In this document: positions 15,352-60,078 of the stretch, piece by piece
Layout: each line of letters starts with the position of its first letter
How positions within the stretch are numbered: the first letter of the stretch is position 1
Assembly (NCBI GenBank): GCA_010909165.1
Contig: VJWM01000172.1
Coordinates: 186,001 to 250,000 of the forward strand
Length of the DNA stretch: 64,000 bases
Direction: 5' to 3'
Source of the DNA: Anthoceros angustus
Lineage: Eukaryota; Plantae; Anthocerotophyta
Position numbers and translations under genes: made by a program
The notes under the pieces: generated by a model
Seen by the model: only the letters and a program-made list of their open reading frames with translations
The model's database searches: none
Told to the model about the DNA's origin: nothing

Positions 15352-18300
15352 TCAAGCACCTCCGAATTTTTTTGTGTGTTCAATCTTGAAAGCCTTCACT
15401 TCTCGGGTGTACATCCTGGGAGCTATGGCCATGGACATGAGCTCCTGAAACAGGAGCTTGCAAGCATATGGAACGTGGACTTGCACTATATCCGTCTTGT
15501 TCTTACATCCTCGGCACTCGTAGGTGTTCTTCTTCAAGTTGGCGATGGCGATGAGCCCGCAGTGCTGGCAGACATGTACTCTGTAAGCGTCGCTCTGATC
15601 GAAGAGTCTTTCCTTGAGGAAATGGGCTGCCCCATGTGCTATCATGCAGTCCCTCTCCATCTCCCCGAACCTGAGCCCTCCATCCCTGGACCTTCCTTCA
15701 GCAGGCTGCCGGGTAAGGATCTGCACGGGCCCTCTCCCTCGGGAATGGATCTTGTCGTCCACCATGTGCTTCAGCCTCTGATAGTAGGTGGGTCCTAAGA
15801 AAACCATGGCAGCCAGAGGCCTCCCTGTGTGCCCGTTGTACATCCTCTCGAACCCCCGCATCTGGTACCCGCACTTATTCAGTGCCTTGCTGATGTTGTC
15901 CACAGTGACATCCGTGAAGGGGGTAGCGTCCCCCTCCTTCCCCATGTGCGCTGCCACCTTCCCCATGATGCACTCGATCAGCTGCCCGATGGTCATCCGG
16001 GACGGGATGGCATGTGGGTTCACGATGATGTCCGGGGTGATGCCCTCCTGGGTCCATGGCATGTCCTCCTGCGTGTACGTCATCCCCACAGTCCCCTTCT
16101 GCCCGTGCCTGCTGCTGAACTTGTCTCCGATCTGCGGGATCCTGATGGACCGAACCCTGATCTTCACAAACCTGAGCCCATCAGCGTTGGTGGTGAGCAG
16201 AACCTGGTCGATCATCCCGCTCTCGCTGTGCCGCAGACATGTGCTCTGATCCCTCTTGGAGTATCTCTGATGGGTCTGATCCCCATGCTCCTCCCCATGC
16301 AGAGGAGTGGTCTTGCCTATGATCACATCCTCCCCAGACACCCTGGTCCCGGGAGGAGCCAGCCCATCCAGATCCAGCTTGTCATACGAGCCATGCCTCA
16401 TACCCGTCGTGTTCTCCCTGTTGGGCCTCTCGAACTCCTCCTTCACCAGGCTCCCCTGCTTCTTCTCCTCATCCCTGTACGACCTGTAGAAGATGGAGCG
16501 GAAGAAGCCCCGGTCTATGGCAGACTGGTTCATGATCACCGAGTCCTCCTGGTTGTACCCAGAGTAGCATGCAATGGCCACGATAGCATTGATCCCCGCA
16601 GGCAGCTGCCTGAAATGCAGATGCTCCATGGCCCTGGTGGTCACCAGAGGCTTCTGCGGGTAGTACAGCACGTAGGCCAAAGTATCCATCCGGAGCTGGT
16701 AGTTTGTGACATAGATCCCCATGGCCTGCTTCCCCATGGCAGACTGGTAGGTGTTCCTCGGGCTCTGGTTATGGTCAGGGAAGGGGATGATGGACCCACA
16801 CACTCCCAGAATCATGGACGGATGGATCTCACAATGGGTGTATATATCAGAGTATGCCTCATCCGGATTGTTCCTGGCATTCACAAGATCAGCAATGGTC
16901 ATGGAGATCATGGTCGTCTCCTCCTCCTCCGTATCCACATACTCGAAGAAACCCTTATCCACCAGCACATTCCACCCTCCCGCCGCCGACTCCCTCTGCT
17001 GCAAAGCCCTCATATCCGACTTCTTGATCAACAGCCGCTGCTTCTCCACGATAAACAAGGGCCGGCTACACCGCCCATAATCTGTGTACAGCCTCAGCTC
17101 CTTCAACCTGATGTCCCTCACAACCCCAACCTCCGGATTCACATCCACCTGCCTCCTCAGCGACCTCAAAGTCCTCACCAGCAGCTCGGGGTCCCTATGT
17201 ATCCCCACCCAACACCCATTCACAAACACCTTGGTGGAGTTGGGGATCACGGCAGGGGAGATCTCCTCGAACCCCTCCGTGCTCCACTCGTCCAGAAACT
17301 CCAGAATTGGGTTTGCCACAGATCCCACCGTGATGTAAGCCATGAGAGCCAGATTCTTCACCAACCCACAAGCTTGCCCTTCAGGAGTCTCTGCCGGGCA
17401 CATCATCCCCCAATGCGAATTATGCAGCTGCCGGGGCTTGGCCAGCTTTCCTTCCCTCCCGATGGGAGAATTCAGCCTCCTCAGATGGGAAAGGGTAGAA
17501 GCATAGGTCAGCCTGTTCAACACCTGCGACACTCCAGCCCTCACCCCCGCCGTGTTGGCCTGCCCCCAGTTCCCCGTTGCCAGAGAATACTTCAAGGCAC
17601 TGGTGATGGTCTTTGCCTTCACAGCATAGGCCAAATTCACATCCTTCCCATCATCCACACACTTCTGCAGATAGCTCCTCACATCCTTGGTCAGCTTCCT
17701 GAACAGCATCCTGAACAAACCTCCCAGCAAAGGTCCTGCCAGATCCAGCCTCTTATTCCCATAGTGATCCCTATCATCCTCAGCCCTCCTCCCCAAAGCA
17801 CAGAGCAGCAGCCGGTGGATGATGTATCCGAAGAAATACGCTTTCTTGGTCTCAAAGAACTCGCCTACTCCGACATGGGGAAGCATCTCCTTCTGCAAGA
17901 TCTCTTTCGCATACTTGATCCGCTTCTCCCTCGTCACCCCAACAGTGGATCCCCTCTTCCCGATATAATCCAGCGCCACCTGCTGGTTCTGGATCACAAA
18001 CGCCTCCTCCAGCGACGGCCTCAAAAGCTCCATCATGGCCGTGTCCGTGAAGTCGTAGCAGATGTGCTCCAGAATGTCCTTGTCTGCGACATAGCCCAGA
18101 GCTCGGAACACGACGATGATGGGAATCTCGGTTCTGATGTACGGGAGAGTGGCTCTGATGTACTGCCCCGAGGACCCCCCTTTTGCCCCGGCTCTGGAGA
18201 GCATGCGGACAAACATGCTGCTTGCTGGCCGGTTCTGATTCTCCGCCATAGACCTCACCTCCGCGACGAAAGCGTATTTGTTCGGCTGTCGTTTCTTGAA

Positions 18301-18921
18301 GACGTAGACGTGGTTTGTGCTCATTTTCTCCTGCGCGATCAGAACCTTCTCGCTGCCGTTGATGATGAAGTAGCCGCCCTGGTCGTAGGGACATTCTCCG
18401 AGCTCGGTGAGATCCTTATCCGAGTTACCATGCAGCGTGCAGTTCCGCGACCTCAGCATGATGGGAACCTTGCCAATGTACACCTTGGGGAGCTCCTCCT
18501 GCTCCACTTCCTCCTCCCCGTCGTCGCCCTTCCTCATCACCTTCTTCACCACGTCCATGTAGAGGGGAGCCGAGTAGGTGAGGTTCCGCAGCCTGGCGGC
18601 TTTCGGAAAGAGGGTGGCTGTCTCCCCGTCTGATTCTGTCATCATCGGCCGGCTCAGGTATATCTGCCCGAAGTTGATCTTGTACAGCGTCTCCCCCTGA
18701 TCCGCCTCCCCCGCGCTCCTGCCCGGGTTGTGCTGCGACTCCGAACGGATCTCGATGTCCGCCGACTCGTCCACGATCTCCTGCATCGTGTTCAGGATGA
18801 ACTCGTCGAACGAGTCCAGCTGCTGCCGCACCAGCCCTTTCTCTTCGAAGAAGGCGCTGATCACAGCCCACGCATCCTCCTGCGTGATCTCCTCGTCTTC
18901 TTCCTCCTCGTCCCCGAACAT
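15352..18921 (-). CDS. NRPB2: RNA polymerase II second-largest subunit, copy 1, intronless (1189 aa)
   Basis: One uninterrupted ORF with [51 protein letters not shown] and a C-terminal Zn ribbon. The track start at 18996 is TTG; the first ATG is 18921 (MFGDEEE). Confidence 0.98.
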
Positions 18922-19068
18922 TTCTGCTGCTGCTGCGTCTTCTTCTTGCGACCCCCAGCTGCTGCAAAGTGCGAGCGAACAAGCTTCAAGCTTCAAGAAC
19001 CGCCTCTTCCCGTCGCTGGGAACGCCGTTGATGTATGTACGTCGTGTTGAGGGTGAGCATGCTGACTC

Positions 19069-19581: not shown

Positions 19582-21929
19582 ATGGCTGCTCCGGCTCTGT
19601 CGACGCCCTTCCAGCCATATGTTTATCAGGTATGACTGCTTTGCGGAAAGCTGCAGGTTTTGATCTCCTCGTCGATGCGGTTTCGTAGTGCGCAATCGGC
19701 ACTCTATCGGTGTGCGGTCCTAGAGTGCTGTTAGGTTGGGTATGAGTCCGCAGCTGCTGGTTTTCTGTTAGCAAGGCCTGCAATTTCCTTGGATGCTTTG
19801 TTCAGCTGTGTGTAGAAGGAGACGAATGGTTTGGTTGCCATCTTATGGAGGTCTGGTTGGTGAATTCTAGTAGATTTGTAATTGCCAGAGTAGCTATGGC
19901 GCCGTGATTCTACTGTAGGAGTTCAGTTCGATTCGTGTGGATGCACCTTCTTGATTCAAAGGGTTCCTATGGTGTTTAGATGCATGACGCATGAATTGGC
20001 TGTTACAGAGTCCGCAGGCATCGATAACGCCGTTTCAAATACTTGGTGGGGAAGCACAAGTCGTACAGGCATGGTTTTTCTACCTCCTTGTACTGCTTCT
20101 TGCCTTTCCGGTCCTTTTCCTTTAGGTGTTTCTGACCTGTTATTGGTGCCTATTGTGGTGCAGATAATGTTGAAACCAGATGAGAAAATCCTAGCAAGGC
20201 CAGGTATGCGTTTTAGCGGTCACACGCTTGTTTGAGGAGAGCAAGACTGGGTCTGACAATTCCGATAATATGCAGGCACTCATGTCTCGGTTTCTTCTCA
20301 CTTCCTTGGTGCCTGTGGTGTGAACTGCATGCAGGAATGATGTGCTACATGTCTGGATCAGTGCAGGTGGAAAATAATCTACCTGTGGACAATAACCTCC
20401 TTGCTGGTTTCTTTCAATGGCTGTTTGCAAAACATCAGCCAACAATCACGTACTACTCAAGTTCCACAGCTCTTGTGATTGTCATGTGCACTGAACTATG
20501 CAACATGTGCACTCGTGGAAACCAAAATGTCAATGTTAATTCTAAAATGGCCAAACTGGTTGTGAACACTGTCTCAGGTTTGTCAACTCCGGAGGTGGAG
20601 ATGGCTACATTGGTTTAGCTGCCCCTGCACCAGCAAGGATTCTTCCAGTGCGGCCCTAGCCCTTAGTCCAAATTCGCCTTTTCGTCTGGAAGCACTGCTT
20701 GGAGACATTGATATCTAGCTGTGGTTCCTTGTTGACAGGTTGACCTGGCCTTGTTTGGTGGGGAGATTATCTGCCAGGTTTTGTTCCAAGCCTCTGGCAA
20801 AATGCACAGTGCCTTACTCTCCAACATGGCTTTGATTAACAATTCTGATTGTCTTGCAGCGGGATTCATATTTATGCTCCATCAATGACGTGAAAGTGTC
20901 CTCTCTCACAACCCGACGGGTGCGGGCTGGGTTTTTGGTGGCAGAGGTGGGTTCAATAGAATTTCGCTGAGTAACAGACTGAATGTGCTCGGCAAAGTAG
21001 CTGAGCATGCAATGATTAGATATTCTCGGCAAAGTTGGCTTGTCGAGCAGCCACTAATCTGTCAGGTCTGGTTGCAGGCTGTTTATATGCACAAGCTAGT
21101 AGGACGCGGGCTTGCCTTCATCACAGCTGGAGGGTCTAGTAGGTTCTTGTCTGCAGTAATACCTGTTTAGTTGGCATTCGCTGGTTCTGAATTGTCAACA
21201 AGATGCTCTCTGAATGTCTTTATGTGGTGTTGGTGGTGCCAATATCTTGCATTCCATGCCCAGACATGTCTTGCTGGATTTGCGCTTAACAGTCTCCATC
21301 CCGTGTGGTGTGTGCAGTTGTTCAAAAAAGTCTTGCCCGGGGGGAAGCGTTGATTGTTGATGCTGGTTGTGTTGTCGCCATGACAAGCAATGTCAGTATG
21401 GAGGTCAAATACGTCGGCAACCTCAAGTGGCCGTTGTTTGCGGTAAATTTTACTGTTCACCTGCAAGTTGCTATGTCTGTCAGTTGAGTTCATCCTAGGT
21501 TCACACGAATTGATTCTTCAAGAGTCCATCTGAACCAACTTGCGTCTGTATTGAGCATCCCACCTACAGCATGCAAGATGTTTTTATTTTGAGTCACCTC
21601 TGGCGGTTGGTTCTAAGGACGGAGTTCATGCATGTGTTGCAGAGTGAGGGACTCTTTCAAGCGCATCTGACCGGACCCGGAGTTGTCTTCATTCAAAGCT
21701 TGCCTTTCAGTCGCTTTGCTCAGCGTATAGCAAGGTACAGTCTATTTGGCTTCATCAGTTGTGGCGTTTCGGTTTGGTGCTTCGTGTTGTTCTGAGTTAA
21801 TGCCTCTCTTCTTTCAGGGCCGTCTCAAACTCTAATATGCGAGAGAACCCACGCGTCCTATTCCAACTCATCTTGTTCTTCTTCTTAGCTTATGTCATGA
21901 TTCTTACTTCGATACTCTTCTCCGAGTGA
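19582..21929 (+). CDS. AIM24: AIM24-domain protein (plant type, C-terminal TM), multi-exon
   Basis: MAAPALSTPFQPYVYQ | ITPFQILGGEAQVVQ | IMLKPDEKILARPG .. GYIGLAAPAPARILP .. LTGPGVVFIQSLPFSRFAQRIAR .. MRENPRVLFQLILFFFLAYVMILTSILFSE*. Includes a GC-AG intron at 20069-20163. Confidence 0.92.
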
Positions 21930-22434
21930 CCAAAGATATTTAGCTTGCTGCTGGCATGCAGAAGTCAAGGACGACTGCTTGCGAAAATGCAACAGGAAGG
22001 AAGTGCACATCCTTGAGTGTGTTTCCGGCTTAACTTTCTCTTAACTTATCGAAGCGGGAATGAGTTGAACTCTCGCAACCTTGAGACTAGAACTCCCGAG
22101 CATGCTGCTGTGACCAGGCTGCTATCCTCCTGATTTGGATCAAGGTCGTCAAGCTCTAGCAGTTCATGCATATTACCACAAATTTGCTCGAGTAGAACAC
22201 GAGCCCTGGATTTTAATCACACTGGCCATTTTTGTCTCTGATTTCAATGGCCGTCAAACCTGTATGCCTTAGCAAGTCGCGCCATGGCAATCAGCATAGG
22301 GAATCGATTTGGAACAATAACAGCCTCCGTTGTGAAAGTGTATGGGAACAGGATCTCCGGGCCTGTAAACCACAGCTCCACAAAGAAGCGTCATAGCGAA
22401 CCTGGTCAAGGACGTGACAACAATCGTTCTTACT
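21521..22434. repeat. Duplicated segment A (AIM24 3' end, intergenic DNA, PqaA last exon); partner at 24955-25800
   Basis: Colinear near-identity by eye, e.g. ATCTGAACCAACTTG.GTCTGTATTGAGCATCCCACCTAC and TTTGCTCGAGTAGAAC..GCGCCATGGCAATCAGCATAGGG in both copies. Confidence 0.92.
22254..22401 (-). pseudogene. Orphan frameshifted copy of the PqaA-like last exon
   Basis: Homologous to 25622-25771 but with 1-nt deletions (CATAGGGA vs CATAGGGGA; AAAGAAGCG vs AAAGAAAGCG). Confidence 0.85.
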
Positions 22435-22802
22435 GACAAGGGCGGCGGACTCCGTTGCCATGGTCACCTCCACTTCCAACTTCCGACCTTCTTCGCTCTC
22501 TAGAAGCTCCACACGTCAAAGGGACAATTCCTTTTGTGGGCACAAGACCCTGCAACAGCTTAGAATTAGCATATAATGCTTCTATTCTTTGAAAAGTTTG
22601 TCCCTTATTTCATGTGGTTCATCAACCAATAGAATATCACTGTCGTAGTGGATGCTAGTTGATCGATCTTTTGACTACTAGTCACAAGGCTGATAAATGC
22701 CTCGTATGTAAGAAGAGGCTGTGGGCATTGCTCTTTGCTGTCACTACAAAATGGCAGCACCAAGGATCGCTTTCTCTCCATCGCTCACATTCCGCAACTC
22801 CA
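22435..22802. repeat. Duplicated segment B (promoter and first codons of the CRAL-TRIO gene); partner at 29902-30276
   Basis: GACAAGGGCGG..TTCCACTTCCAACTTCCGACCTTCTTCGCTCTCT..CTTTCATGTGGTTCATCAACCA..CATCGCTCACATTCCGCA.CTCCA in both copies. Truncated start MAAPRIAFSPSLTFRNS at 22751. Confidence 0.92.
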
Positions 22803-24304: not shown

Positions 24305-24954
24305 AGGCGGTACAGGACAGCAGAGCCGTCACAGTTCGAAACCGCCCCTAAGCTCCGACCAGGAATCGCTACCGATCGATGACCTTTATCTCTGGAAGCT
24401 ATCCGAAGGTCTCCGGAAGCTCTCCGAAGCTCAAAGGCAAAGCCCCTCCCTCCAATTCGTTCGTCTCTCCCGTAAGGCGTAGGTGAGGACCGCGGTGGAC
24501 CCAAGGACAGCCAGCCCAGCCGAGCCCAGCGAAGCAGAGAGTGCAGCAACTTCACAAGAGCACAAACCTCCTAAGGCAACAGGAAGAAAAGGCGGCTTCT
24601 TGCCTCAGAAGAGGAAAGGATGGTTATGACAGGTAGAGAGTGAGCAGAAGGAGGCGGCATGCTTCCAAGATGCGAGAGCACCACCGGGACTCAAATTCCC
24701 TTCAGCATCGAATTCAGGGGAGCTGTGCTGTAGAGCGGAAGACAGCGGGCGGGAGGGGAACAGCGCAAGGGGGCAGGGAATTGCAGGAAGGCACAAGCAT
24801 AGGCGAGGGCCATCGACAACACAATCAAACACTTCAAACACTCAAACAAGCCACACACTGTGCGGCAAGGGGGACACTCAAAGCGGGAGGCGCAGGAGCG
24901 GAGAGCGAGGAGCGGAGGTCAGCACTGAAAGAGGAAAAGGGAACGGGTCATTCC

Positions 24955-25367
24955 AGGGTCTATCTGAACCAACTTGAGTCTGTATTGAGCATCCCACCTA
25001 CAACATGCAAAATGATTTTTTTTTTTTTGAGTCTCCTCCCGCGATCGGTTCCGAGGACGGAGTTCATGCATGTGTTGCAGAGTGAGGGACTCTGTCAAGC
25101 GCATCTGACCGGACCTGGAGTTGTCTTCACTGAAAGCTTGCCTTTCAGTCGCTTTGCTCAGCGAATAGCAAGGTACAGTCTATTCGACTTCCTCAGTTGT
25201 GGCATTTCGGCTTGGTGCTGCATGTTGTTCTGAGTCGATGCCTCTCTTCTTTGAGGGCCATCTCAAATTCTGATATGCGACAGAACCCCCGCGTCCTATT
25301 CCAACTCATCTTGTTCTTCTTCTCAGCTTGTGTCATGATTCTCAATTCGATACTCTTCTCCGAGTGA
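24955..25367 (+). pseudogene. Partial duplicate of the last two AIM24 exons
   Basis: SEGLCQAHLTGPGVVFTESLPFSRFAQRIAR and the last exon ending CTCCGAGTGA. No upstream exons; the acceptor context TTCAG is changed to TTGAG. Confidence 0.85.
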
Positions 25368-25621
25368 TCAAAGATACTTTGCTTGCTGCTGGTATGCAGA
25401 AGTCAAGGACGACTGCTTGCGGAAGTGCAACGGGAAGGAAGTGCACATCCTGGAGCGTGTTTGCAGCTTCACTTTATCTTAACTTATCGCAGCGGAAATC
25501 AATTGAACTCTAGCAACCTTGAGATTGGAACCCATAATGACACAACTTTGCTCGAGTAGAACATGAGTCCTGAATTTTAATCACACTGGCCATTTTTGTC
25601 TCTGATTATCAGCAACGGCTA

Positions 25622-28535
25622 TCAAACCAGTACGCCCTGACAAGCCGCGCCATGGCAATCAGCATAGGGGAATCGATTTGGAACAATGACGGCCTCCGTT
25701 GTGAAAATGTATGGGAACAGGATCTCCGGGCCTGCAAACCAGAGCTCCACAAAGAAAGCGCCATAGCGCTCCTGGTCAAGCACATGACAACAATCGTTAC
25801 TATCAGAAAATATGAGCCGTAGCTTTGATAAACATTCTGGTCAATGTTTCCGGGCAAGAGATCTCTACTGTAAATCTCAACCCTGTTCGTAATGAGTAAA
25901 TATGAACTCTGCAAATATGGACTCTTCAAGCAAAAATTCCATAAACATGAACTCTGTGCAAATGAACCAGCGTGACATTGGAGTTGGAACCTTGGGGTAA
26001 GACAAAAGTGACTTTGAGCTCGCCAACATACCTCCTGGGAAGCTATGGATGCAGTGTAGGTTCTGACCCCATCAACAGTGGAAGGACTGATATTCTTTTC
26101 TCGGAAAAAGATGGGCTGGAAGCAGCCTCCCGAGATCACAAAAGTTGGGCTGCAACAGTTGTTGGCAACACATTTACATTGAAGATCTTAAGAAGCATAA
26201 AATAACCAGTAGGCAGCGACTCACCAGTCATCGATGTTGCCGGTCAGCCACCGGAAGTCCCGCCTCCTGCTGTCCTTGGTGTAAGCATACCACAAGGTCG
26301 CCTTTAGGGGCTTGTCTAGAGTTGTGATCTGTAGAATCCCAGTGTCCCTGTCAATTTGCCACCAGTAGCTGGGCCGACTGATGTTCAGCTTTGTCGGAGA
26401 ACAGGACCTCACGATGCTCATGCCAACATCATTCTCTGTCGAGGATGGTTGGAGGTTTGTTACTTTCTCACTTCCAGTGACGATGCTGAGATAGAATGCC
26501 TGCACAGCTGCTACAAGCTGGTGCACATATGTGGAAACCAGAATGAGTGTCCCCATTTGGTGTTACAGCAGCAAAGAGGCCATAGCATACGGTGCAGGGC
26601 AGTCATACCTTGACCAGCCCCGTTGCTAGTGAGTGCTCTGTATTGGGCAGTACCAGCATGTGCTTTTCGCCCTTCAACTCATTCCAGTAGTACAGGCTGC
26701 ATATACATGGCAGCAGGGAGTTTATCCTTCCTGAGGACTGCTATGGTTAAGCAACCACACAAGCTAACAAAGTATGTACCTGTCATCCATCAAGAAGAAC
26801 TCGTCATTTGAAGCGATGACAATGAGCTTTGGCATGGTGAGCCGTTCCTTGTACACCAAGGGGTCCACTATGCTCTGCAATGTACGAGAAGCATCATGAC
26901 GGGTCCCTTCTACCATCAGATGATACAGTAGCCCGCTTAAGAGATTTTGGAGACTGACCATAAGTTGTGCCATTTCCGGTGTATCCAGCTGTGCAGTGAT
27001 GTTCAGGGCGTAGTATGGCTGAAATGCAAAGGTCCAGCCGCCAAGAGATTGATAGAAGTGGTGAAGGTTTGGCACGAAGTTTAGGGCATCCATAACGATA
27101 GGGACAATCCCGACGACACGCTGCAGACCCACGCATGAACGTTAAGCTCATTCTTTCAACACAAGGACAGGCCATTGCAACTGTCAAAGTCTGCATTGAA
27201 ACCAAACAAGACCTTCTGTCGGCATGAACTGTACCACTACTGGTTGTTGGAGGGTTAGTAGGTCCATGCCTTGTCCACGGCACCTGTGGTCCAGGTTGTC
27301 CAACCACGTTTGCTTGCCCCGGCGACCACAAAACTGGCAACCTGTAAGATCGCAAGGTCAGAAACGCACTGTCCTAAGGTTCATGTACACCACTGGCCCC
27401 ATGTGGGCAGGTGGTCAATTGGATTGGGGATGCATGGAAGACCTCAGCATTCAGCTGTAGGCTGGCATATTCCTGAATCACATCCATTGCTCGAACAGCA
27501 GACTTGGTCATGGGAAGTCGAGCGAGCCATCTAGCACTGTCAGGGTGCTTCATAAAGTAGTACCAAGTATCTGGAAAACGTGTAGGAAAACAACGAAATC
27601 TGACTTAAGTTCAGCAGAAGAGATGAACCAGCAGAAGAGATGAACCAAGTAAGCAGGTGAAGGGAGTGCACAAACGGCAATCATTTGAAAATACAGAAGA
27701 CCTACAGGCAATGAGATCATCTTCATAACGATGCATTCGACTCCCATCACTTGTGAAACGGCAAGGCTGGTTGGGCACTTGATAAAGCACGGCAGTAATG
27801 GTCTTTGTGTTCACAGCAACACTAACCAACCAGGCAAACCATTACGGCTACATTCTCACAGCTCGATCACCTCCTTCTCCATACGGCATTGACATAAACA
27901 TAAACCTCATAACAAGGAATCCTTACGCCGCTGCTAGCTCAAGAAGCTCGTCTTTGGCTGTGGGCGGATCATTTGTGTTGCTACCTCCTCCGATGAGCAT
28001 AAACGCTGTGTCTACGTACTTGATTGAGCCAGGCTTCTGCAAGAGGAGTACAGAATCGACCAAACCTTCATTCATGCTGTCCATCTCACAAGAAGCTATT
28101 ACACCAAGTCAGACCACACTTCTCCTCACCACAATGACGAGGTGATGCGTCCAGACTGTACAGTCCACATCGTTGGTGGATAGCCACCCTTGGCTGGTCA
28201 TGTTTAGCACATAACCCTCCCATCTCCCCGTAGGAAACCATCCGTTCACTCGTGTGCCTGTGTCAAACCAGCTAGACAGTAGAGGACACCCTGCCTATGA
28301 GGCAAATTCCATCGAAGGATGAATTCTGAACCTAACAGCAGGACACTTCTCAACTGCTCCTCCCAGTTCTGATCATATCTAGCATGCATGCACACCTGAA
28401 GTGTGGATCTGGCTGAAGAATGTAATCGTCCAGAGGAGTCCCTAAGACTGGCCCACACAGAAGGACCCCGAGAAACAGTAAGAACATCGCTCCAATCCAG
28501 ATTCTTGCCATAGCTGCTGGCATGGCACAGTACAT
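25622..28535 (-). CDS. PqaA / AprA-like (PhoPQ-activated pathogenicity-related family) secreted alpha/beta-hydrolase-like protein, multi-exon
   Basis: Signal peptide then GTPLDDYILQPDPHF. Motifs YVLNMTSQGW, FMLIGGGSN, LYQVPNQP, YEDDLIA, LPMTKSAVRAMD, FVVAGASKRGWTTW, NFVPNLHHFYQSLGGWTF, IVDPLVY..MPKLIVIASNDEFF, LPNTEH, RRRDFR and C-terminal FTTEAVIVPNRFPYADCHGAACQGVLV*. ATG could be 28535, 28523 or 28511. Confidence 0.9.
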
Positions 28536-29590: not shown

Positions 29591-30224
29591 CTTGGATTGG
29601 ATTGGATTTAACATCAGCCAACCATAACTTGTCCTCGCATTGCAACAATAGTTGCGGGTAAGCCCCCATGTCTTTGCTGTGTCAAGATCTTGTCCAGCTC
29701 CTCAGGTGTGATGGATGTTTTCAGCCTGACCAAACATCACACCGACAGGGACTCTGTCTTGCTCAGGTATCAGCAGAGCATCCCTAATCTGACGCATCTG
29801 CCATGAAGACAAAACAAGTCATGGAACTACTATCTCCACTTCATGGATCAATCACAACCTACAGGACGCTGAATATATATGCCAGACATGGCTCATGGTG
29901 GGACAAGGGCGGTGGACTGCGTTGCCACAGTCAGTTCCACTTCCAACTTCCGACCTTCTTCGCTCTCTGGAAGTGGAAGGAAGCTCCAGACGTCAAAGGG
30001 ACACTTCCTTCCTGGGCACAAAACCCTGCAACAGCCTAGAAATAGCATATAATGCCATTATTCTGTGAAAATTGTCCCTTCTTTCATGTGGTTCATCAAC
30101 CAACTGGATGTCACTGTCGTAGTAGATGCTCGTTGATCGATCTTTTGACTACCGGTCACCAGGCTGATGAATGCCTCATATGTAAGAAGAGCCTGTGGGC
30201 ATTGCTCTTTGCTGTCACGACAGA

Positions 30225-31874: not shown

Positions 31875-34185
<2,311 letters not shown>

Positions 34186-46136: not shown

Positions 46137-46823
46137 AAGCAAGGGATTTCCCGCTCCTCGATTTTTGTCACCAAATTACTCGCCAAAATCTCTCCTCACT
46201 TGCAAATGATAATGCGAAGCCATGACACACACAATTGCAGCGATGAGGAATTGGATGCAGGATACCTAATCAGCCATGGAAGATTTTGCCCTACCGTACG
46301 AAGCGGGTTGCAGCAGCGCAGCTGGGAGAGTGGTGCACCATCGCTCTGGAGGAAAACACAAGAAAATTTCACCTTCCGCTCCCATGGCAGAGGCAGGACG
46401 CTCCGGAATCCACAATCAGAAGGGCCAACGGACAGGGCAGAGGTCGGGTAGGATCCGGAGGAGCTCGGCCGATCAGTCGCGCAATTCCGCTTCCCGATGC
46501 CGGCCCCCGCGCGACCGACGCGAAATGCCCTACGCAAAATGCTCGTACGCAAGTTTCGCCAGGGGTTTCGCCGGTTAAGTTCTCGGGCTCGCGTTCGCAA
46601 CTGTCTGAACTGCTCGTCTTGGCGCGGCGTGGAGGGTGGAGGAAGCTGAACCTGCCCATCGGCGTCTGCTTGCTTGCGGCGTGTTGTCACCCGCGCCTGG
46701 CTATGGTCTCGGCCAGACCCCTGTCGCTCAGTCGGATTTCTGCGTGCAGGACGCGGCATGGCCTTCGTCTGGCTATGGAGGTCGACCGGGAGGGACCCAA
46801 GGCTGACCAAGAGAGCGAGGACC

Positions 46824-48524
46824 ATGGCTGATTTCCTGGAAGAGCTCCCGGATCGAGCTGCACCCAAACCCTATCTGCATCGGCCCCAGCTACTTGTGGC
46901 TGCTCGATCGCTGCCGTTTGTAGCTTCGAGTTGCTTCCCGAGCCCCGTCAACCAGAGTGTCAGGTGTACAGAGCTCTTGACCTGCGTCAAGCATCTCCCA
47001 ATCTGGCAGGAGAGTCGTTGTCCAGTGTCATACCCGTCTGCTGGATGTTCTGTTCATGGCGGAACAAGTAGGTTTTTTAGTGGAGTAACTGGCCAAGGTC
47101 CCGGAGATGCAGGTGCAGCACCGGTACCCTCCCATGAAGTTGTGCTGCGCTATGGTCCTTTCCGCGACGACGTTAGGATCGGGAGGTATAAGATGGGAAA
47201 GACTCTCGGGTCAGGAAGCTATGGCTTGGTCAGGGCGGGCTTCAATGCCGAGACGGGGGATGTGGTGGCCGTCAAGATTATGAATAAGAGAATGGAGGCA
47301 TTTAAAGTGGCTCGTTGTAAGGACCAACTCCGTCGGGAGATCTTTGCAATGACTAAGGTGTCTCATCCGAACATTGTCCAGCTGCTGGAAGTGATGGCTT
47401 CCAAGGAGAGGATCTTTTTGGTGATGGAGCTTGTGCCCGGTGGAGATCTGGAGAATAGTGTGCGAGCCAGACCGCAGAAGCTAACCGAGGCCCAAGCAAG
47501 ACGATACTTCCAGCAAATTCTGACGGCAGTGGACTTCTGCCACCTGAAGGGCGTGTATCACAGAGACCTGAAGCCTGCGAACGTTCTTTTGGATGCGGAT
47601 GACAACGCCAAAGTTGCAGATTTCGGGTTGGGCGCCCTAGCAGACACAGACAACATGACGTATTTCACGGCCGACCTCTTACTGAAGTCGCAGGTTGGAA
47701 CTCCTCTGTTCATGGCTCCGGAGATCCTTGATTACACAACGAAACCGCAGGAGGGTAGTGCAGCGGGCTACAGCGGAGCCAAAGCTGACGTCTTCTCTTG
47801 TGGAGTTATCCTGTACTATCTACTTTCAAAGCAGGTCCCGTTCAGTTGGAGGGCTTCGATGCCAGAACTTCAGCGCCACAAGTTGCAAGCACAGTACCCT
47901 CCCTGGCCCACGGAGATCTGTGCCGACGCTCGGAAGCTTATTACCAGCATGCTACATCCCATCCCTGCCAATCGCATTGCGATGGCATCGATCTTCAAGG
48001 ACAGATGGTTCACGCAGGACTTGCGGCCTTCGAACTTCCGGATGGTGAAGAAGGTGGCCGCCAGCCTTGAGGAAATCGACAAAGCCTTCAAGGAACCGCT
48101 CCCCCTGGATCGTAGCAAGCTGAAGCCGGCCAAGCCTAATGCATTCGCTTTGATAGCGGGTGCACCAAGCTTCAATCTGGGACACATGGTACAAGACAAG
48201 CACACAGAATGGGAGGAGAGGCGATATATATCGAAGCTCCCAGCTCTCGAGATTCTGGGGAAGATTGCAGATACTGTGTCGCGTTTTGGCTACAACGCTC
48301 AATGCAGAGGATACAAAGTAAGGTTGGACGCAGCAGTGCCTAGCCGGCAAGGACCGCTTTGCATCTTAGCAGAAGTGTTCCAAGCAGACGACGACCTCGT
48401 CATCGTGGAGGTCCGCAAAGTGGTTGGGGATTCCAAGGAATTCAAGATCTTCTTTATTAAGTTCACTACGGCACTCGAGAATGTCCTCGAGCTTGTTGAA
48501 TGGACTCCAGACTTCGAAGATTAA
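46824..48524 (+). CDS. CIPK: CBL-interacting protein kinase (SnRK3), intronless across the kinase, NAF and C-terminal domains
   Basis: RYKMGKTLGSGSYGLV, VAVKIM, HRDLKPANVLL, DFG, MAPE, NAF motif KPNAFALIA and C-terminal KA1-like domain in one ORF. Start uncertain (46758 or 46824). Confidence 0.88.
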   Translation: MADFLEELPDRAAPKPYLHRPQLLVAARSLPFVASSCFPSPVNQSVRCTELLTCVKHLPIWQESRCPVSYPSAGCSVHGGTSRFFSGVTGQGPGDAGAAPVPSHEVVLRYGPFRDDVRIGRYKMGKTLGSGSYGLVRAGFNAETGDVVAVKIMNKRMEAFKVARCKDQLRREIFAMTKVSHPNIVQLLEVMASKERIFLVMELVPGGDLENSVRARPQKLTEAQARRYFQQILTAVDFCHLKGVYHRDLKPANVLLDADDNAKVADFGLGALADTDNMTYFTADLLLKSQVGTPLFMAPEILDYTTKPQEGSAAGYSGAKADVFSCGVILYYLLSKQVPFSWRASMPELQRHKLQAQYPPWPTEICADARKLITSMLHPIPANRIAMASIFKDRWFTQDLRPSNFRMVKKVAASLEEIDKAFKEPLPLDRSKLKPAKPNAFALIAGAPSFNLGHMVQDKHTEWEERRYISKLPALEILGKIADTVSRFGYNAQCRGYKVRLDAAVPSRQGPLCILAEVFQADDDLVIVEVRKVVGDSKEFKIFFIKFTTALENVLELVEWTPDFED

Positions 48525-51382: not shown

Positions 51383-52065
51383 GCCCTTGAAAGATCAGTC
51401 TTTGAAATGAAGGGATCCGCTGCGCAATGGCAGGAATCACGAGATTTCTTGAAGATTTCTTGGCCAGCCCAGTTTGCGCTGGCTGGGAGCCTGTAAATCG
51501 AGCCTTGGCGCCTTGTAGGGAAGCACGCGCTGAGCAAAAAACACACAGATCTGATCGATCTTGGATTTCCAGATTGCAAGGGTTCACAAAGTGCTTTCCT
51601 CCCTAACCGTGGCGCGCTCCAAGCACGATTTCGAAGACTACCCTCTGTTCCTTGCCCCACGGTCCTCATTCTCGCGCTCGCCATCATCTCCACGCTCCGC
51701 CCAACTCGATTTCCAGCTGATGTTTGCGCCATGATGCGAAAGCAACCCTCACGCTTGGTGGTGCTCCTCCCATGTTGATCAGGTGCCTTGTTTGGGTTTG
51801 GGTCCAGTTTGGTTTCACACCTAAACTAAGTGGCTTTTTCTAGCCTACCTAGTTATCCGTTCATAACGGATCTATTTCCAATAACTAGTATTTAAAGGAA
51901 ATGAATCCTTGGACTATGGGCCAATCAAAATAAAGGATATGTTTTCATGTCCTTGGTTAATGAAAATGCCTAACCAAACGTAGTATATAAAAGCAAGCAT
52001 ACATCGAGTTCACATTCTTTGCATGCGTGCCTTAGTTCTTGTATCTTGACGTTGTGGTCATTGCG

Positions 52066-52225
52066 GCGATCCGGCGATCCATTGTGGGGCCATGTCCCAT
52101 GGGGGCGATCCCGGTCCCGGGTGTGGGGCGCCATGTCCCATGGGCGATCCCGGTATCCCGGGTGTGGGGCCATGTCCCATTTGGGGCGGTCCCCGTCCAG
52201 TGGATGCCATGTCCCATGTCTGGGA
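52066..52225. repeat. Second GCCATGTCCCA motif cluster
   Basis: GGCGATCCGGCGATCC followed by four GCCATGTCCCA-type units, same orientation as the 49745 cluster. Confidence 0.85.
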
Positions 52226-52480
52226 CGGTCTTGGCAACCTCCTGACACCCCGTCGACACCGAGGCCAAAGCGCGCAAGTACAGCGGGCAGGAGGAAAGGA
52301 GGGAGCATAGAAGGCCGTGGAAGAGGAGGGAGAGTAAAGGGGAGCTCGCGCGTGGAAGGGGGAAGAGTGATGGAGGAGGACAGGAGTGCGGTGGTGGCGG
52401 GGAGCGGTGAGGGCGGAGGCGACGCGGCCGGAGGCGCCATGGTGGAGGGCACTCTGTCCATGCCCATGCCCATGCCCATG

Positions 52481-52590
52481 GCGATGGCGATGGCGATGGC
52501 GATGGCGATGGCGATGGCGATGGCGATGGCGATGGCGATGGCGATGGCGATGCGATGGCGATGGCGATAGCGATGGCGATGGCGATAGCG
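52481..52590. repeat. (GCGATG)n microsatellite inside a very GC-rich block (about 52380-53570) with internal 70-120 bp repeats
   Basis: 12 perfect units at 52481-52552, then imperfect units. GCAGCGAAGGGGAGGATTGC..GGACACCGTGCTCTCCCCTTGGCGATGGC at ~52670 and ~52915. Confidence 0.92.
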
Positions 52591-54222
52591 GCGGAAGTGG
52601 GTGGTGGGGCGCCATGGGGAGGGCATGCCCTACGCCATGGCGATGGCGGCGGCGATGGCGGCAGCGGGCGGCAGCGAAGGGGAGGATTGCAGGAGAGAAG
52701 GCGGGGAGGACACCGTGCTCTCCCCTTGGCGATGGCGGCGGCGGCGGCAAGGCGGCGGCGCAGGGGAGGGCGTGCCTCCTGGCGATGGCGACAAGCGGAG
52801 GGGAGGTCATGCGGCGGCCGGAGGCGCTGGGAGGCACCATGCCCTCCCATTGGCGATGGCGGCGGCGGCGGCGGCGGCGCCATGGGGAGGCGTGTGCCTC
52901 CCAGCTATGGAGGCGGCAGCGAAGGGGAGGATTGCGGCGAGAGAAGGCGGGGAGGACACCGTGCTCTCCCCTTGGCGATGGCATCGGCGGTGGTGGCGGC
53001 ACCATGGGGAGGCGTGTGCCTCCCACAGCGATGGAGGCGGCGGAGGGAGGCGGCGGCGAAACAGCGGAGGGAGTGCACCGTGCCTCCCTTGGAGATGGCG
53101 GTGATGGCGGCGGTGAGTTGGCGGGGAGGCGGGCTCCTCCACCCTCAAGGCGGGGAGGGCATGGCCTCCCGGTGCCTCCCATCACTGCCCCCTCGCCACC
53201 TGCCACCTCCCACCTCCATCGCCCGAGGCAGGCATTGGCGGCGGGGGGACCCGTGTTAGTGGGCGCAGGGGAGGGCACCGTCCCTCCTCCTGGCGATGGG
53301 CGAGGCGACTGGGCGGAGGCTGGTGGGTTGCGTTCTTGCCACGCGCCCGAGGCCAAGCTCGTGCATGGCGGTGGCGGTTCATGCCGCCATGGAGCCGAGG
53401 CCGAGCTCGGGCATGGTGGCGAGGCGATGGCGCCCACCCAACCCGAGGCCGGCCGAAGGCGTGGCGATGGCGACAATTACGGCAGCGGCATGCATGGTGT
53501 GGATGGAGGCGACGCCGTGCAGGCGGCGGACGAAGAGCCAACGCCTGCAGTGCTGGCGGCAATCACGGTAGGGGAGTGGGATTGGTTTTTTGCTTTTTGT
53601 TAGGGGGGCCGAAGCACGCGCCGTAGGAAGGCCGCAATAGGAGATAGAGTTTGATGCAAGTTGTGCAACTTTGCGATGTGTGCAATGGACATCCTTTTTT
53701 TATGAATGGAATAGCTCCCCTTTGCTGTAAACTTCGGCTCGTTGCAGGGACCCTAAACATTCTTGGTGAGGTTGTTGGGTAGACGCTGGTGGTGGTGTGG
53801 CTAATTGCTGCAGATGCTGAAAGGTTCACATATAGCTGTGGCTGATGGCTGCTAATGCTGCAATATGTGGTGCTGCCCTCTGCAATCGTCAGCCTTCATG
53901 TTAGAGGACATTGAGGAGGTGCCTTCTCTGTATGAGCAGTTGCCTGCGAGTCTGGGCGAGGCAATGGCATCCATTCTTGCAGCCTGGGCGCGTCTTTAGT
54001 CGCTTATAGCCTGAACATTTCAGCAGCTTAATCTGAACGTTCATCTTAATCTACGGGAGCAGGCTGAAGAAGTGGCGTTGGTCACGGTATTCTTACTTAG
54101 CTGTTGCAGTGGGCCTTGAGCAGGACATTATGAGCAAGCACTGGTCTACTTCCGCCCCACCCCTGCTTCACCAATGTAGCGATCGATTTGTCTCTGGAGC
54201 CTACACTCCTGTCAACAAACTT

Positions 54223-55517: not shown

Positions 55518-56469
55518 TCGCGGGTTCCCCAACAAAAACACGATTCCAATGTCCCTAGCTGAGAAGATGCGGATACGACCGCGGGCATGTGCAGGGTTTG
55601 CAAACCATGGCAGTGCCGGCGCTCGTGGCCGTCATTGCTTGGAAGACAATGGCTACGGCCCGAGGTAGGGTTTGGCAACCAGATGGGGTGGCCGGTGCTG
55701 CGGCCGGCTTCGGGTTTGGCGGCCATGGGATAGCATCGAAGAAAACATAATCGCAGAAGGTAGAGCGGAGGAACTCTGAAAACATAGTGTCTCGGCTCTT
55801 TATTTTCAAGTTGCAAGGATTGAAACATTTTCAAGCACACACAGAGAATGAGTGTGTGTCCCCTTTGATGTTTGGCCGCTCTTGGTTAGGGCCCCAAAGC
55901 GGACATTTCAGCATGTGCTATGAGGGTGAAGCGCCGTACAGGAATCAATGGACTATTCTTCAAGATGCCTACGCGTAGTAGGGGTTTCACGCGAAAAAAA
56001 ATGCCCCATCCCCTCTGTCCTCTTTGGTATGCCATAAATAGTATAGAGGAGATTTGATGTTTTTTTATCTCCCCATCCAAGCATCGCGTTTTATGATTTA
56101 TGCCTAGCTTTAAGGGAAAGGAAAGGTTTTTGTAACAACATGATATTTATTTTATATTTTTATTAAAAATAATTCAAATTTCATAGAAGACAGAGAATTT
56201 TGCAAAGCCTAAAACCACTCAGTTCTTTTGGGGTTCAGTACTCATGGGGCAAGCGAAAAAAAAAATGGTGCAAGCGAGCGTTTACACAAAAAATAATGAA
56301 CCTATGCCTCAACCTCCGAAAGCTTTCCACAAAGCTTTCCACAAGGCTTTCCCCTCTCAATAAAAGAGAGCTGGGCTTGTTGCTTAGCAGGACAGGGCCA
56401 CATGGAGATTTGATGCCTATGAGAGTATACACATGCAAGTAATTTTGCGGAAAAGTCTAACTATCATGT

Positions 56470-59400
56470 TCACCCAGCAGATTTCTTCTGCTCCTTTTGA
56501 GACTTGGGGATTTCCTTCGTGAACATCCGAGGAGCAATGGCCATGGACATTAACTCCTGGAACAAGAGTTTACATGCGTAAGGAATATGAACCTGTACAA
56601 TGTCAGTCTTGTTCTTGCAGCCCCTGCATTCGTATGAGTTCTTCTTCAAGTTTGCAATGGCAATCAGACCGCAGTGCTCACACACGTGAACTCTGTATGC
56701 ATCACTTTGATCAAAAAGCCTCTCCTTCAAGAAGTGAGCGGCTCCATGGGCAATCATACAGTCACGTTCCATCTCCCCAAATCGCAGACCTCCATCCCGA
56801 GACCGACCTTCAGCAGGTTGCCGGGTGAGAATTTGCACTGGGCCTCGTCCTCGAGAGTGGATCTTGTCATCCACCATATGTTTCAGTCTCTGGTAATATG
56901 TCGGGCCTATGAAGATCATGGCAGCAAGTGGACGACCTGTATGTCCATTATACATCCGCTCAAAACCTCTCATTTGGTATCCACACTTGTGGAGTGCTTT
57001 ACTGATGTTATCCACTGTAACATCGGTAAAAGGAGTGGCATCACCTTCTTTTCCCATGTGAGCTGCCACCTTTCCCATGATACACTCGATCAGCTGGCCA
57101 ATTGTCATACGAGAGGGAATAGCATGCGGATTGACAATGATGTCAGGGGTGATGCCTTCACAAGTCCAGGGCATATCCTCCTGGGTGTAAGTCATCCCCA
57201 CTGTACCCTTCTGCCCATGCCTACTGCTGAACTTGTCTCCAATCTGCGGCACGCGAATGGAACGGACCCTGACTTTCACAAACCTGAGCCCATCAGCATT
57301 TGTTGTCAGCAGGACCTGGTCAATCATCCCACTCTCACTGTGGCGGAGACACGTGCTTTGGTCCCGTTTTGAGTATTTCTGAGCCTGACCACTTTGGTCT
57401 TCACCTTGCAGGGGGGAGGTTTTTCCTATGATGACATCTTCACCAGAAACCCTTGTTCCTGGAGGGGCCAGACCATCAAGATCCAGCTTGTCATAGGAGC
57501 CATGACGCATCCCTGTCGTATTCTCTCTGTTTGGCCTCTCAAACTCCTCCTTCACCAAAGTCCCTTGCTTCTTCTCCTCATCTCTGTAAGAACGGTAGAA
57601 GATGGACCGGAAGAAGCCACGGTCGATGGAAGACTGATTCATGATAACAGAATCCTCCTGATTGTACCCAGAGTAGCAGGCGATGGCCACAATAGCATTG
57701 ATGCCTGCAGGGAGCTGCCTAAAATGCAGGTGCTCCATGGCCCGGGTGGTTACAAGTGGCTTCTGTGGGTAGTACAACACATATGCCAGGGTGTCCATGC
57801 GCAGCTGATAATTGGTGACGTATATCCCCATAGCTTGCTTTCCCATGGCAGACTGATAGGTGTTCCTCGGACTCTGATTGTGGTCAGGAAACGGAATAAT
57901 GGACCCACAGACTCCCAGAATCATGGACGGGTGAATTTCACAGTGTGTGTACGTATCTGAGTAAGCCTCATCTGGCACATTTCTTGCATTCACAAGATCT
58001 GCAATAGTCATGGAAATCATAGTAGTTTCCTCTTCTTCAGTGTCCACATACTCAATGAACCCCTTATCCACAAGGACATTCCAACCACCAGCTGTATTCT
58101 CCCTCTGCTGCAAGGCACGAATATCTGACTTCTTTATGAGGAGCCTCTGCTTGTCGACAATAAACAATGGGCGACTGCAGCGCCCATAATCTGTGTACAG
58201 CCGCAGTTCCCTAAGTCGAATATCACGCACCACTCCTACCTCAGGGTTGACATCAACCTGTCGCCTCAAGGAGCGGAGAGTCCTAACAAGCAAATCAGGA
58301 TCACGATGGATGCCCACCCAGGAACCATTTACAAAAACTTTGGTGGAGCTGGGAATCACGGCTGGCGATATCTCCTCAAAACCCTCTGTGCTCCACTCGT
58401 CCAAAAACTCCAAAATGGGGTTGGCCACAGAACCTACAGTGATGTAGGCCATGAGAGCCAGATTCTTCACCAAACCACAAGCCTGGCCCTCCGGAGTTTC
58501 AGCAGGGCACATCATTCCCCAGTGGGAGTTATGCAGCTGCCTCGGCTTTGCTAGCTTCCCTTCACGACCAATCGGGGAATTCAACCTCCGCAGATGGGAG
58601 AGAGTAGAAGCATACGTCAGCCTATTCAACACCTGCGACACTCCAGCTCTCACACCTGCAGTGTTAGCCTGACCCCAGTTCCCCGTTGCCAGCGAATACT
58701 TGAGACCACTAGTGATAGTTTTAGCTTTCACTGCATATGCCAGATTGATATCCTTCCCACTGTCAACACACTTCTGCAGATAGCTGCGCACATCCTTGGT
58801 CAGTTTCCGAAACAACATCCGAAATAGCCCTCCCAACAGGGGCCCGGCAAGATCCAGGCGCTTATTACCATAATGATCCCTGTCATCCTCTGCACGACGG
58901 CCTAGGGCACACAGTAGCAGCCTGTGAATAATGTACCCGAAAAAATAGGCCTTCTTGGTCTCAAAAAACTCCCCCACACCCACATGAGGCAGCATCTCCT
59001 TTTGCAAAATCTCCTTGGCATACTTGATACGCTTCTCCTTGGTCACTCCCACCGTGGACCCCCTCTTCCCGATGTAATCCAGAGCCACCTGCTGATTCTG
59101 AATGACAAAAGCCTCCTCCAAAGAAGGCCGCAACAGCTCCATCATGGCAATATCGTTGAAGTCATAGCATATGTGCTCCAAAATATCCTTATCAGCCACG
59201 AACCCCAAAGCCCTGAAAACAACGATAATAGGAATTTCGGTTCGAATGTAGGGCAGCGTGGCGCGAATGTACTGCCCCGAGGACCCCCCCTTGGCCCCCG
59301 CTCTGGACAGCATCCGCACGAACATACTACTGGCCGGCCGGTTCTGATTCTCAGCCATAGACCGCACCTCGGCAACGAAAGCGTACTTGTTCGGCTGCCG

Positions 59401-60078
59401 CTTCTTAAACACATACACATGGTTTGTGCTCATCTTCTCCTGCGCGATCAAAACCTTCTCACTCCCGTTGATAATGAAGTACCCGCCCTGGTCATAAGGA
59501 CACTCTCCCAGCTCCGTCAGGTCCTTGTCCGAATTCCCATGCAAAGTGCAATTCCGCGACCTCAGCATGATGGGAACCTTGCCGATGTACACCTTGGGGA
59601 GCTCCTCCTGCTCCACCTCCTCCTCCCCGTCGTCCCCCTTCCTGATCACCTTCTTCACCACGTCCATGTACAGGGGCGCGGAGTAGGTCAGGTTCCGCAG
59701 CCGAGCTGCCTTAGGGAAGAGCGTGGCCGTCTCGCCGTCCGACTCCGTCATCATCGGCCTGCTCAGGTAGATCTGCCCGAAGTTGATCTTGTACAGCGTC
59801 TCCGCATCCGCCTCCGCATTCCTCCCCGGATTGTGCTGCGACTCGGACCGGATTTCGATGTCCGCCGACTCGTCCACGATCTCCTGCATCGTGTTCAGGA
59901 TGAATTCGTCGAAGGAATCCAGCTGCTGCCTCACCAGCCCCTTCTCCTCGAAGAAGGCGCTGATCACAGCCCACGCATCTTCCTGAGTTATCTCCTCGCT
60001 TTCCTCCTCATCGTCTTCGTCCATCTCCACTTCCCCTCCCTCTCCTTCGTACTCATCCTCCTCCTCCCCCCCATACAT
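56470..60078 (-). CDS. NRPB2: RNA polymerase II second-largest subunit, copy 2, intronless (1202 aa)
   Basis: One uninterrupted ORF with all RPB2 motifs. The track start at 60105 is GTG; the first ATG is 60078 (MYGGEEED). Confidence 0.98.

Follow-up and report, generated by a model that had tools for sequence, protein, structure and literature searches.

The window, a 64-kb stretch of the Anthoceros angustus genome (contig VJWM01000172.1), contains two complete NRPB2 genes on the minus strand, each consisting of a single reading frame that is uninterrupted from its first ATG. Copy A (15352..18921), referred to as the A-type, encodes a protein of 1189 aa, the N-terminus of which is short, and has a GC3 of 0.77. 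Copy B (56470..60078), the B-type, encodes 1202 aa and has a GC3 of 0.62, which is 0.89 at the 5' end and drops steeply to 0.58. The distance between the ATG of copy A and the stop codon of copy B is 37.5 kb, and a tblastn search within the window returned NRPB2 matches for these two copies only. Being members of one family on one strand, less than 100 kb apart and with few spacer genes between them, the copies are tandem duplicates as defined in PMC7027989, where 9.8% of the A. angustus genes are assigned to tandem clusters. The GC content of the window is 50.5%, compared with 49.6% for the genome (PMC7027989). The exact sequence of neither copy was found in the protein collection.

All seven Pfam domains from Rpb2_1 to Rpb2_7 were detected at full length and in canonical order in both proteins, with E-values ranging from 1e-15 to 1e-142. 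This agrees with the sequence-only reading of the locus, which had proposed two complete intronless RPB2 genes of these lengths and spacing. According to the translations and their alignment, both copies carry the acidic active-site motif GYNQEDS, starting at residue 788 in copy A, and the four C-terminal zinc cysteines are intact in both (residues 1118, 1121, 1136 and 1139 in copy A). Among solved structures, both copies match mammalian RPB2 with about 1760 bits and yeast RPB2 with 1627 bits, as opposed to 745-793 bits for RPC2, 650-660 bits for NRPD2/E2 and 380-396 bits for RPA2. Judged by these matches, the two copies are Pol II-type and not second subunits of Pol I, III or IV/V. Their identity to the NRPB2 of other bryophytes, mosses and liverworts, is 92%.

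The two proteins are identical at 1128 of 1184 aligned residues (95.3%). At the DNA level, the identity is 81.5% overall, 55% at third positions and 42% at four-fold sites. The corresponding dN is 0.035, and dS is above 1 and thus saturated. The earlier estimate of roughly 95% protein identity combined with heavily diverged silent sites was therefore accurate. A codon model resulted in an omega of 0.011, so that the dN/dS check also upheld the suggestion of purifying selection on both copies. Both have been held almost unchanged under very strong purifying selection. Given the age of the pair and its tight conservation, it is almost certain that both copies are in use, as far as this can be read from their sequences.

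The first 150 codons of A and B are more similar to each other (90% DNA identity) than the remaining sequence (80%). Gene conversion between the copies at the 5' end was considered as a reason for this and rejected, since convergent base composition explains the excess identity at least as well. In this region, GC3 is about 0.88 in both copies, and the quartet patterns of 5:8:8 do not favour a grouping of A with B.

Two intron-free NRPB2 copies, one short and one long, were also found in one other plant sample (Logan SRR33208241). They lie on separate contigs. When the C-terminal 450 aa were used to look for partial copies in further relatives or for copies in RNA assemblies, no protein above 90% identity was returned. 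In a maximum-likelihood tree, the four intron-free sequences form a clade (100/100) inside the land-plant NRPB2 and separate from those of mosses, liverworts, lycophytes, ferns and seed plants. Within this clade, copy A groups with the short copy of the relative (100/99). The grouping of copy B with the long copy is a weak node (94/39). An AU test rejected a clade of A and B (p=0.003). Because copy A groups with the short copy and the clade of A and B is rejected, the duplication is older than the split from this relative. The amino acid site patterns among the four copies comprise 11 paralogue-specific, 2 species-specific and 3 crossed sites. In a codon tree of five sequences, A again joins the short copy, whereas B and the long copy do not group together, and the quartet signal at the nucleotide level is fully saturated (80:85:85). 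Pairwise dN among the four copies is between 0.03 and 0.046, again with saturated dS. The stem branch of the A-type is longer than that of the B-type (0.022 versus 0.003). The excess of changes on the A-type stem, 9 versus 2, is not significant (p=0.065).

The NRPB2 genes of Marchantia paleacea and Sphagnum were each matched in 21 tblastn pieces and thus have at least 21 exons. In Physcomitrium, nine pieces were found, equivalent to about 9-10 exons, one of which spans residues 78-642. Both window copies and both copies of SRR33208241 are single ORFs on genomic contigs. Given the at least 21 exons of the liverwort and Sphagnum genes, the intron-free state is derived. In the stretch of about 700 bases 3' of each stop codon, neither a poly(A) remnant nor a target-site duplication was seen, and such marks would have been erased by age in any case. 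The data do not discriminate between retroposition and a cDNA-mediated loss of the introns in place.

The similarity between A and B at the DNA level is confined to the coding sequence (15407-18945 versus 56519-60048). No homology survives in the flanks, as expected for a pair of this age. With neither retroposition marks nor flank homology to go by, how the introns were lost and how the gene was duplicated can only be inferred.

The surroundings of the two genes had been described as intron-rich. This holds for several multi-exon neighbours, namely a V-ATPase a subunit, an M16 peptidase, an AAA ATPase and a gene at 25.6-28.3 kb, but not for an F-box/Kelch gene (44811-46142) and a CIPK-like kinase (46674-48524), both of which are single ORFs located between the copies. 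The locus of copy B and the contig with the long copy of SRR33208241 have the upstream neighbour and one nearby gene in common. The flanks of the short copy have no match in the window and, within the available contig, are unrelated to those of copy A. No shared neighbours were found within 10 kb of NRPB2 in Marchantia, Sphagnum or Physcomitrium. According to the gene tables, these three share none among themselves either, so that this comparison has no power to show a move of the gene. Retroelements are present in the window. The DNA 2-4 kb downstream of the M. paleacea NRPB2 matches the window at 61.06-63.3 kb (E 8e-103) and at 6.3-9.3 kb. This match was rejected as synteny, as it represents a decayed retroelement with a reverse transcriptase motif, a weak RVT_1 hit (22 bits) and stop codons in both species. 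For the NRPB2 flanks of Sphagnum and Physcomitrium, nothing in the window matched.

The derived residues of copy A are Y277, A442, M637, F659, I693, N1015, V1150 and Y1171, the first six of which occur in none of about 115-117 other plant RPB2s. The alignments show that the A-type has fixed about seven substitutions at positions that are near-invariant in 117 other green-plant RPB2s. All A-type changes are conservative (F/Y, G/A, I/F, I/M, T/I, H/N and I/V). Copy B has the ancestral residue at 9 of the 11 paralogue-specific sites. It carries an acidic N-terminal insert of 18 residues (60016..60069, minus strand; residues 4-21 of B when aligned with A), located after the start motif MYGG(D/E)EE(D/E)Y that is conserved in plants. 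The long copy of the relative has this insert as well. The A-type has instead lost about six residues of the start motif. Further differences are located in a variable surface loop inside Rpb2_6, which the alignments place at residues 871-886 of copy A (16264..16311, minus strand) and 887-901 of copy B (57376..57420, minus strand). The diagnostic peptides named in the sequence-only reading are real and correspond to these residues. The paralogues also differ in their C-terminal tails past the conserved APRM motif, at 15355..15423 in copy A and 56473..56535 in copy B, both on the minus strand. In addition, all four copies have 19 lineage-specific substitutions in common, at sites that are invariant in seven other land plants.

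Compared with other land-plant NRPB2 genes, such as Arabidopsis At4g21710 and the bryophyte orthologues, the window genes have the same seven-domain architecture and the same active-site and zinc motifs. They differ in the lack of introns, in the presence of two anciently diverged copies and in the 19 lineage-specific substitutions. More than one gene is also retained among the angiosperm RPB2 paralogues (the asterid RPB2-d and RPB2-i; duplicates in Penstemon, Trifolium, Striga and Brassica), and in some cases the genes are near each other on a single contig. For this reason, the earlier statement that RPB2 is usually single-copy was too strong, since duplicates exist in several angiosperms and in some of them, Penstemon and Trifolium, lie on one contig. 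The angiosperm paralogues retain most or some of their introns. They are also much younger or restricted to groups within the angiosperms, whereas the window pair is fully intron-free and split before a deep species divergence. Among bryophytes, the NRPB2 of Physcomitrium patens has likewise lost many introns, but it retains some of them, and a single copy was seen. So-called orphan retrogenes, which replaced their parent, are similar in that an essential gene lacks every parental intron. However, neither a poly(A) tract nor a target-site duplication nor a relocated position could be demonstrated for the window copies, so that membership in this class is unproven. Retrotransposition-derived Pol IV/V subunits have reportedly been described by Tucker et al. 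in 2010. NRPD2/NRPE2 is an NRPB2 duplicate that likewise took its own evolutionary path (PMC2834690, PMC5569507). In contrast to it, the window copies remain Pol II-type (about 1760 versus about 650 bits), and A and B have diverged by only 5%.

The sequence-only reading had raised the possibility that intronless RPB2 duplicates are already known across this clade. The same pair does occur in a second species, but no publication on it was found. In the hornwort and Anthoceros literature that was searched, including PMC10533338, PMC7994812, PMC5569507, PMC4476159 and PMC2834690, nothing was found on the copy number or intron content of NRPB2. Intron loss and duplication are an ordinary kind of event, here in a lineage for which no description was found.

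Taken as a whole, the locus is probably best explained by two working NRPB2 genes that arose by intron loss followed by local DNA duplication and were then both conserved for a long time. An ancestor would have shed the whole set of 20-odd introns from its NRPB2 gene, and a single step mediated by reverse transcriptase is the most likely way. This step could have been a retrocopy replacing its parent or gene conversion by the gene's own cDNA. The intron-free gene would then have been duplicated nearby at the DNA level, which is suggested by the linkage of the copies and the lack of introns in both. The local duplication proposed earlier is consistent with this, as the copies are linked and the duplication is old. 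The duplication took place before the species in the window and that of SRR33208241 separated. Afterwards, the core of the B-type stayed ancestral while the acidic N-terminal insert was gained, and the A-type fixed its approximately seven conservative substitutions soon after the duplication and has been frozen since. The survival of both genes would most likely reflect a division of labour in expression, whether by tissue, stage or dosage, and the small differences between the proteins may yield two slightly different forms of Pol II. The sequence-only reading had suggested two isoforms, for example a vegetative and a reproductive one.

Other explanations differ in how they account for the two copies. 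One of them, that A and B are independent retrocopies of an intron-bearing parent, which might still exist elsewhere in the genome, is unlikely. Every intron is absent from both copies, the flanks of A and B lack homology, as do the available flanks of A and the short copy of the relative, and there are retroelements in the window. Nevertheless, two insertions on one strand only 37.5 kb apart would be a coincidence, and the 19 substitutions common to the four copies at invariant sites fit a single intron-free ancestor that evolved for a long time before the duplication. It is very improbable that one copy is silent or decaying. Each reading frame has stayed open for about 1200 codons despite saturated silent sites, a state in which a neutral copy would long since have gained stop codons and frameshifts. 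The omega of 0.011 and the presence of each type, intact, in the second species also speak against decay. An assembly artefact or a haplotype duplicate is hardly conceivable, since the divergence of A from B refutes it. In total, 18% of the coding bases differ, the flanks are unrelated and the N-termini are different, and both types recur in a second sample. As the similarity does not extend beyond the coding sequence, the pair is not an assembly duplicate, and the earlier judgement that this was unlikely was justified.

The alternative with somewhat more weight, although it too is rather unlikely, regards the A-type as a specialised subunit that was adapted after the duplication to a distinct polymerase form or set of partners, in a small replay of the origin of NRPD2, rather than simply as a further unit of expression. 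The 6-7 substitutions at positions that do not vary among about 115-117 other plant RPB2s, which predate the split and have been retained since, point in this direction, as do the partial loss of the conserved N-terminal motif and the stem branch that is longer than that of the B-type. There is also a precedent, since NRPD2 itself is the product of an NRPB2 duplication (PMC2834690). However, the changes are all conservative, the protein still shares 95% of its residues with B and about 92% with the NRPB2 of other bryophytes, and the asymmetry in rate is not significant. That the A-type represents an incipient separate polymerase identity, a hornwort-specific Pol II variant used for example in one life stage or for one class of genes, is a speculative extension and would be less likely still. 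If the A-type were such a variant subunit, it would have been conserved since before a deep lineage split and would parallel the origin of Pol IV/V from Pol II through the duplication of subunits.

On the favoured explanation of intron loss, local duplication and long conservation, the two genes are of interest beyond this locus. NRPB2 belongs to the essential core genes and normally has many introns. An intron-free, duplicated and nearly frozen NRPB2 would therefore offer a clean natural example for the question of how essential genes come through a complete loss of their introns. A second question is why near-identical duplicates of a polymerase subunit persist in a plant group that is known for low gene redundancy (PMC7027989). 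The paralogue-specific peptides and the seven unusual residues of the A-type provide direct handles for proteomics and genetics.

Copy A (15352-18921, minus strand; 1189 AA) and copy B (56470-60078, minus strand; 1202 AA), the two NRPB2 paralogues of the window, lie 37.5 kb apart. Each is encoded by an ORF that is uninterrupted from its first ATG, and a Pfam search found seven RPB2 domains, in order, in both proteins. The proteins are 95.3% identical (1128/1184 aligned residues), compared to 81.5% for the coding DNA, 55% for third codon positions and 42% for four-fold sites. With a dN of 0.035 and a dS above 1, silent sites are saturated. These properties bear out the sequence-only reading, which had described two complete intronless RPB2 paralogues. 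Since the DNA similarity ends at the edges of the coding sequences, the pair is not an assembly duplicate. No further RPB2 fragments were detected by tblastn in the 64-kb window.

Both copies are classified by sequence as Pol II-type. Compared to solved structures, copy A scored about 1760 bits against mammalian and 1627 bits against yeast RPB2, but only 650-660 bits against the second subunit of Pol IV/V, 745-793 bits against that of Pol III and less than 400 bits against that of Pol I. The closest named proteins are bryophyte NRPB2 sequences with 92% identity (Sphagnum, Marchantia, Riccia, Ceratodon and Physcomitrium), followed in the hit table by lycophytes (90-91%) and seed plants (82-88%). 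Both copies carry the active-site motif GYNQEDS as well as the four C-terminal zinc cysteines.

The best database match, P0001 (1186 AA), comes from the Logan sample SRR33208241, where a 10-kb genomic contig encodes it in one ORF adjoining a long PPR gene. The only other protein in its 90% cluster, P0121 (1201 AA), stems from the same sample and is likewise encoded in one ORF; its contig measures 24.7 kb. P0001 has a short N-terminus like copy A, and P0121 a long acidic one like copy B. In a maximum-likelihood (ML) tree of 30 green-plant RPB2 proteins, these four sequences form a clade with a support of 100/100, within which A groups with P0001 (100/99) and B with P0121 (94/39). Constraining A and B together was 36 log-likelihood units worse and was rejected (AU p=0.003), and the amino-acid site patterns comprised 11 paralogue-specific, two species-specific and three crossed sites. 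Together, the tree, the AU test and the site patterns indicate that the duplication predates the split between A. angustus and this relative; each copy and its orthologue are therefore referred to as A-type and B-type. The split is deep, since the DNA identity between orthologues is only about 80% and their silent sites are saturated. In the ML tree, A and its orthologue are separated by a protein path of 0.088, about equal to that between Sphagnum and Physcomitrium. At the land-plant base, the clade forms part of a polytomy and is separate from mosses, liverworts, lycophytes, ferns and seed plants. Of the major land-plant groups, only hornworts lack a labelled sequence in the RPB2 hit table.

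A Goldman-Yang codon model for the four genes and Physcomitrium gave an omega of 0.011. At nine of the 11 paralogue-specific sites, the B-type kept the ancestral residue, as judged against 11 other streptophytes. The A-type residues Y277, A442, M637, F659, I693 and N1015 each occur in none of about 115-117 other plant RPB2s, V1150 in one of 117 and Y1171 in none of 115. All A-type changes are conservative; assigned by Pfam domain, they fall into the lobe, protrusion, external 2, hybrid-binding and clamp regions. Changes peculiar to the B-type comprise D at A-position 626, a residue common elsewhere, and K at A-position 886, a rare one. The B-type also carries an acidic insert of 18 residues after the conserved start MYGG(D/E)EE(D/E)Y, a motif of which about six residues are lost in the A-type. 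Other differences between A and B cluster in three peripheral segments, namely the N-terminus, one Rpb2_6 loop and the C-terminal tail. Across 1010 sites invariant in seven land plants, parsimony placed 19 changes on the common stem, nine on the A-type stem and two on the B-type stem, the latter asymmetry being not significant (p=0.065). For duplicates with so little protein change, the usual outcome is a division of expression. The conserved A-type substitutions may leave room for a modest protein-level difference between the copies.

The GC3 of the A-type exceeds that of the B-type both in the window (0.77 vs 0.62) and in the relative (0.62 vs 0.54). It reaches about 0.88-0.89 at the 5' ends (18472-18921, 150 codons of A; 59575-60078, about 168 codons of B) and then drops to 0.76 in A and 0.58 in B. 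The DNA identity between the copies is 90% at the 5' end and 80% elsewhere, which could reflect either ancient gene conversion or a 5' GC gradient that arose convergently. Antisense ORFs inside the RPB2 genes (15829-18633, 934 codons, and 58924-60144, 406 codons, both plus strand) most likely result from codon bias and do not represent genes.

Exon numbers were estimated from the tblastn pieces of each species' own NRPB2 on its genome. The gene was recovered in 21 pieces in both Marchantia paleacea (span 8.7 kb) and Sphagnum magellanicum (9.2 kb), indicating that the ancestral land-plant NRPB2 was intron-rich. Physcomitrium patens (CM009317.2; 5.1 kb) yielded nine pieces, or about 9-10 exons, one of which covers residues 78-642; set against the 21 or more exons of Sphagnum and Marchantia, this represents stepwise intron loss within mosses. 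On these gene structures, the intron-free NRPB2 is the derived state, with intron loss being partial in mosses and total in the A/B lineage. For the disappearance of more than 20 introns, a single reverse-transcriptase-mediated event would be the simplest explanation. Either a retrocopy could have displaced its parent gene, or NRPB2 itself could have undergone cDNA conversion. Neither a poly(A) remnant nor a target-site duplication was seen beside copy A or B, and a comparison within 10 kb with the NRPB2 loci of three other bryophytes, which had no power, revealed no common neighbours. Because all four genes lack introns and have 19 lineage-specific substitutions in common, the most economical order would be intron loss, a long single-gene period and then a local DNA-level duplication. 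The earlier proposal of an intron-free RPB2 that was duplicated locally and kept under purifying selection is largely right.

Synteny between the B locus and the P0121 contig (L006) is partial: two genes have orthologues on this contig, namely the divergent upstream neighbour of B (63880-63999) and a multi-exon gene (25622-28273, minus strand; L006 4661-7107), three of whose ORF pieces had no Pfam match. In the relative, the latter lies tail-to-tail with the B-type RPB2 at 0.45 kb, but in the window it is inverted and 28 kb from B, which indicates that the interval between A and B was rearranged. Within the short P0001 contig, the flanks of P0001 and A have nothing in common. The spacer between B and its upstream neighbour measures 3.8 kb in the window compared to 0.37 kb in the relative. 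It contains a decayed retroelement with a reverse transcriptase (60900-63300, plus strand), which has a weak RVT_1 match and in-frame stop codons and is missing at the corresponding spot in the relative. Later rearrangement would have wiped out the flank homology of A and B and put this element in place. Its 239-AA tblastx match (47% identity) to an element downstream of the M. paleacea NRPB2 (L007 ~20500-22500) accounts for an apparent shared neighbour, which is not synteny. At 6325-9270, related 3' pieces of the retroelement are arranged as three tandem repeats, each about 1 kb long. The segment 21517-22802 is 87-89% identical to 24951-25798 plus 29902-30276, i.e. the joined flanks of the 25.6-28.3 kb gene with the gene itself gone, and may have arisen by deletion from a local duplication or from a mobile unit. 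On L006, an SMG1 kinase gene (8417-14214 and beyond, minus strand), absent from the window, was called as an uninterrupted 3905-residue product and, as called, would be another very large intron-free gene in the lineage.

The description of the copies as surrounded by intron-rich genes holds for the V-ATPase a-subunit gene and the gene at 25622-28273, which are multi-exon, but not for an F-box/Kelch gene (44811-46142, minus strand) and the CIPK-like kinase gene with a NAF domain head-to-head with it (46674-48524, plus strand), which are single ORFs. The V-ATPase gene (~10000-15300, plus strand) converges on copy A and appears to end within about 100-300 bases of the stop of A, which may make the two 3' UTRs overlap. 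On both strands of the region 52000-53600 (65% GC), there are overlapping ORFs (405-472 codons), whose translation is of low complexity, Pro-rich with His-Arg repeats, and has no Pfam match.

RPB2 duplicates are known from angiosperms, and the hit table contains pairs from Penstemon davidsonii, Trifolium subterraneum, Striga and Brassica, some on one contig. NRPD2 was derived from NRPB2 through duplication (PMC2834690; PMC5569507), and retrotransposition is a recognised origin of polymerase subunit genes (Tucker et al. 2010, as cited in PMC4476159). The A. angustus genome has a GC content of 49.6% (50.5% in the window) and 4.8 exons per gene, and tandem clusters account for 9.8% of its genes (PMC7027989). 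In the literature searched, neither the copy number nor the intron content of hornwort NRPB2 was mentioned, and these genes are presumably included, uncommented, in published hornwort annotations. The intron-free NRPB2 pair adds a new case of known processes, from a lineage that has received little study.
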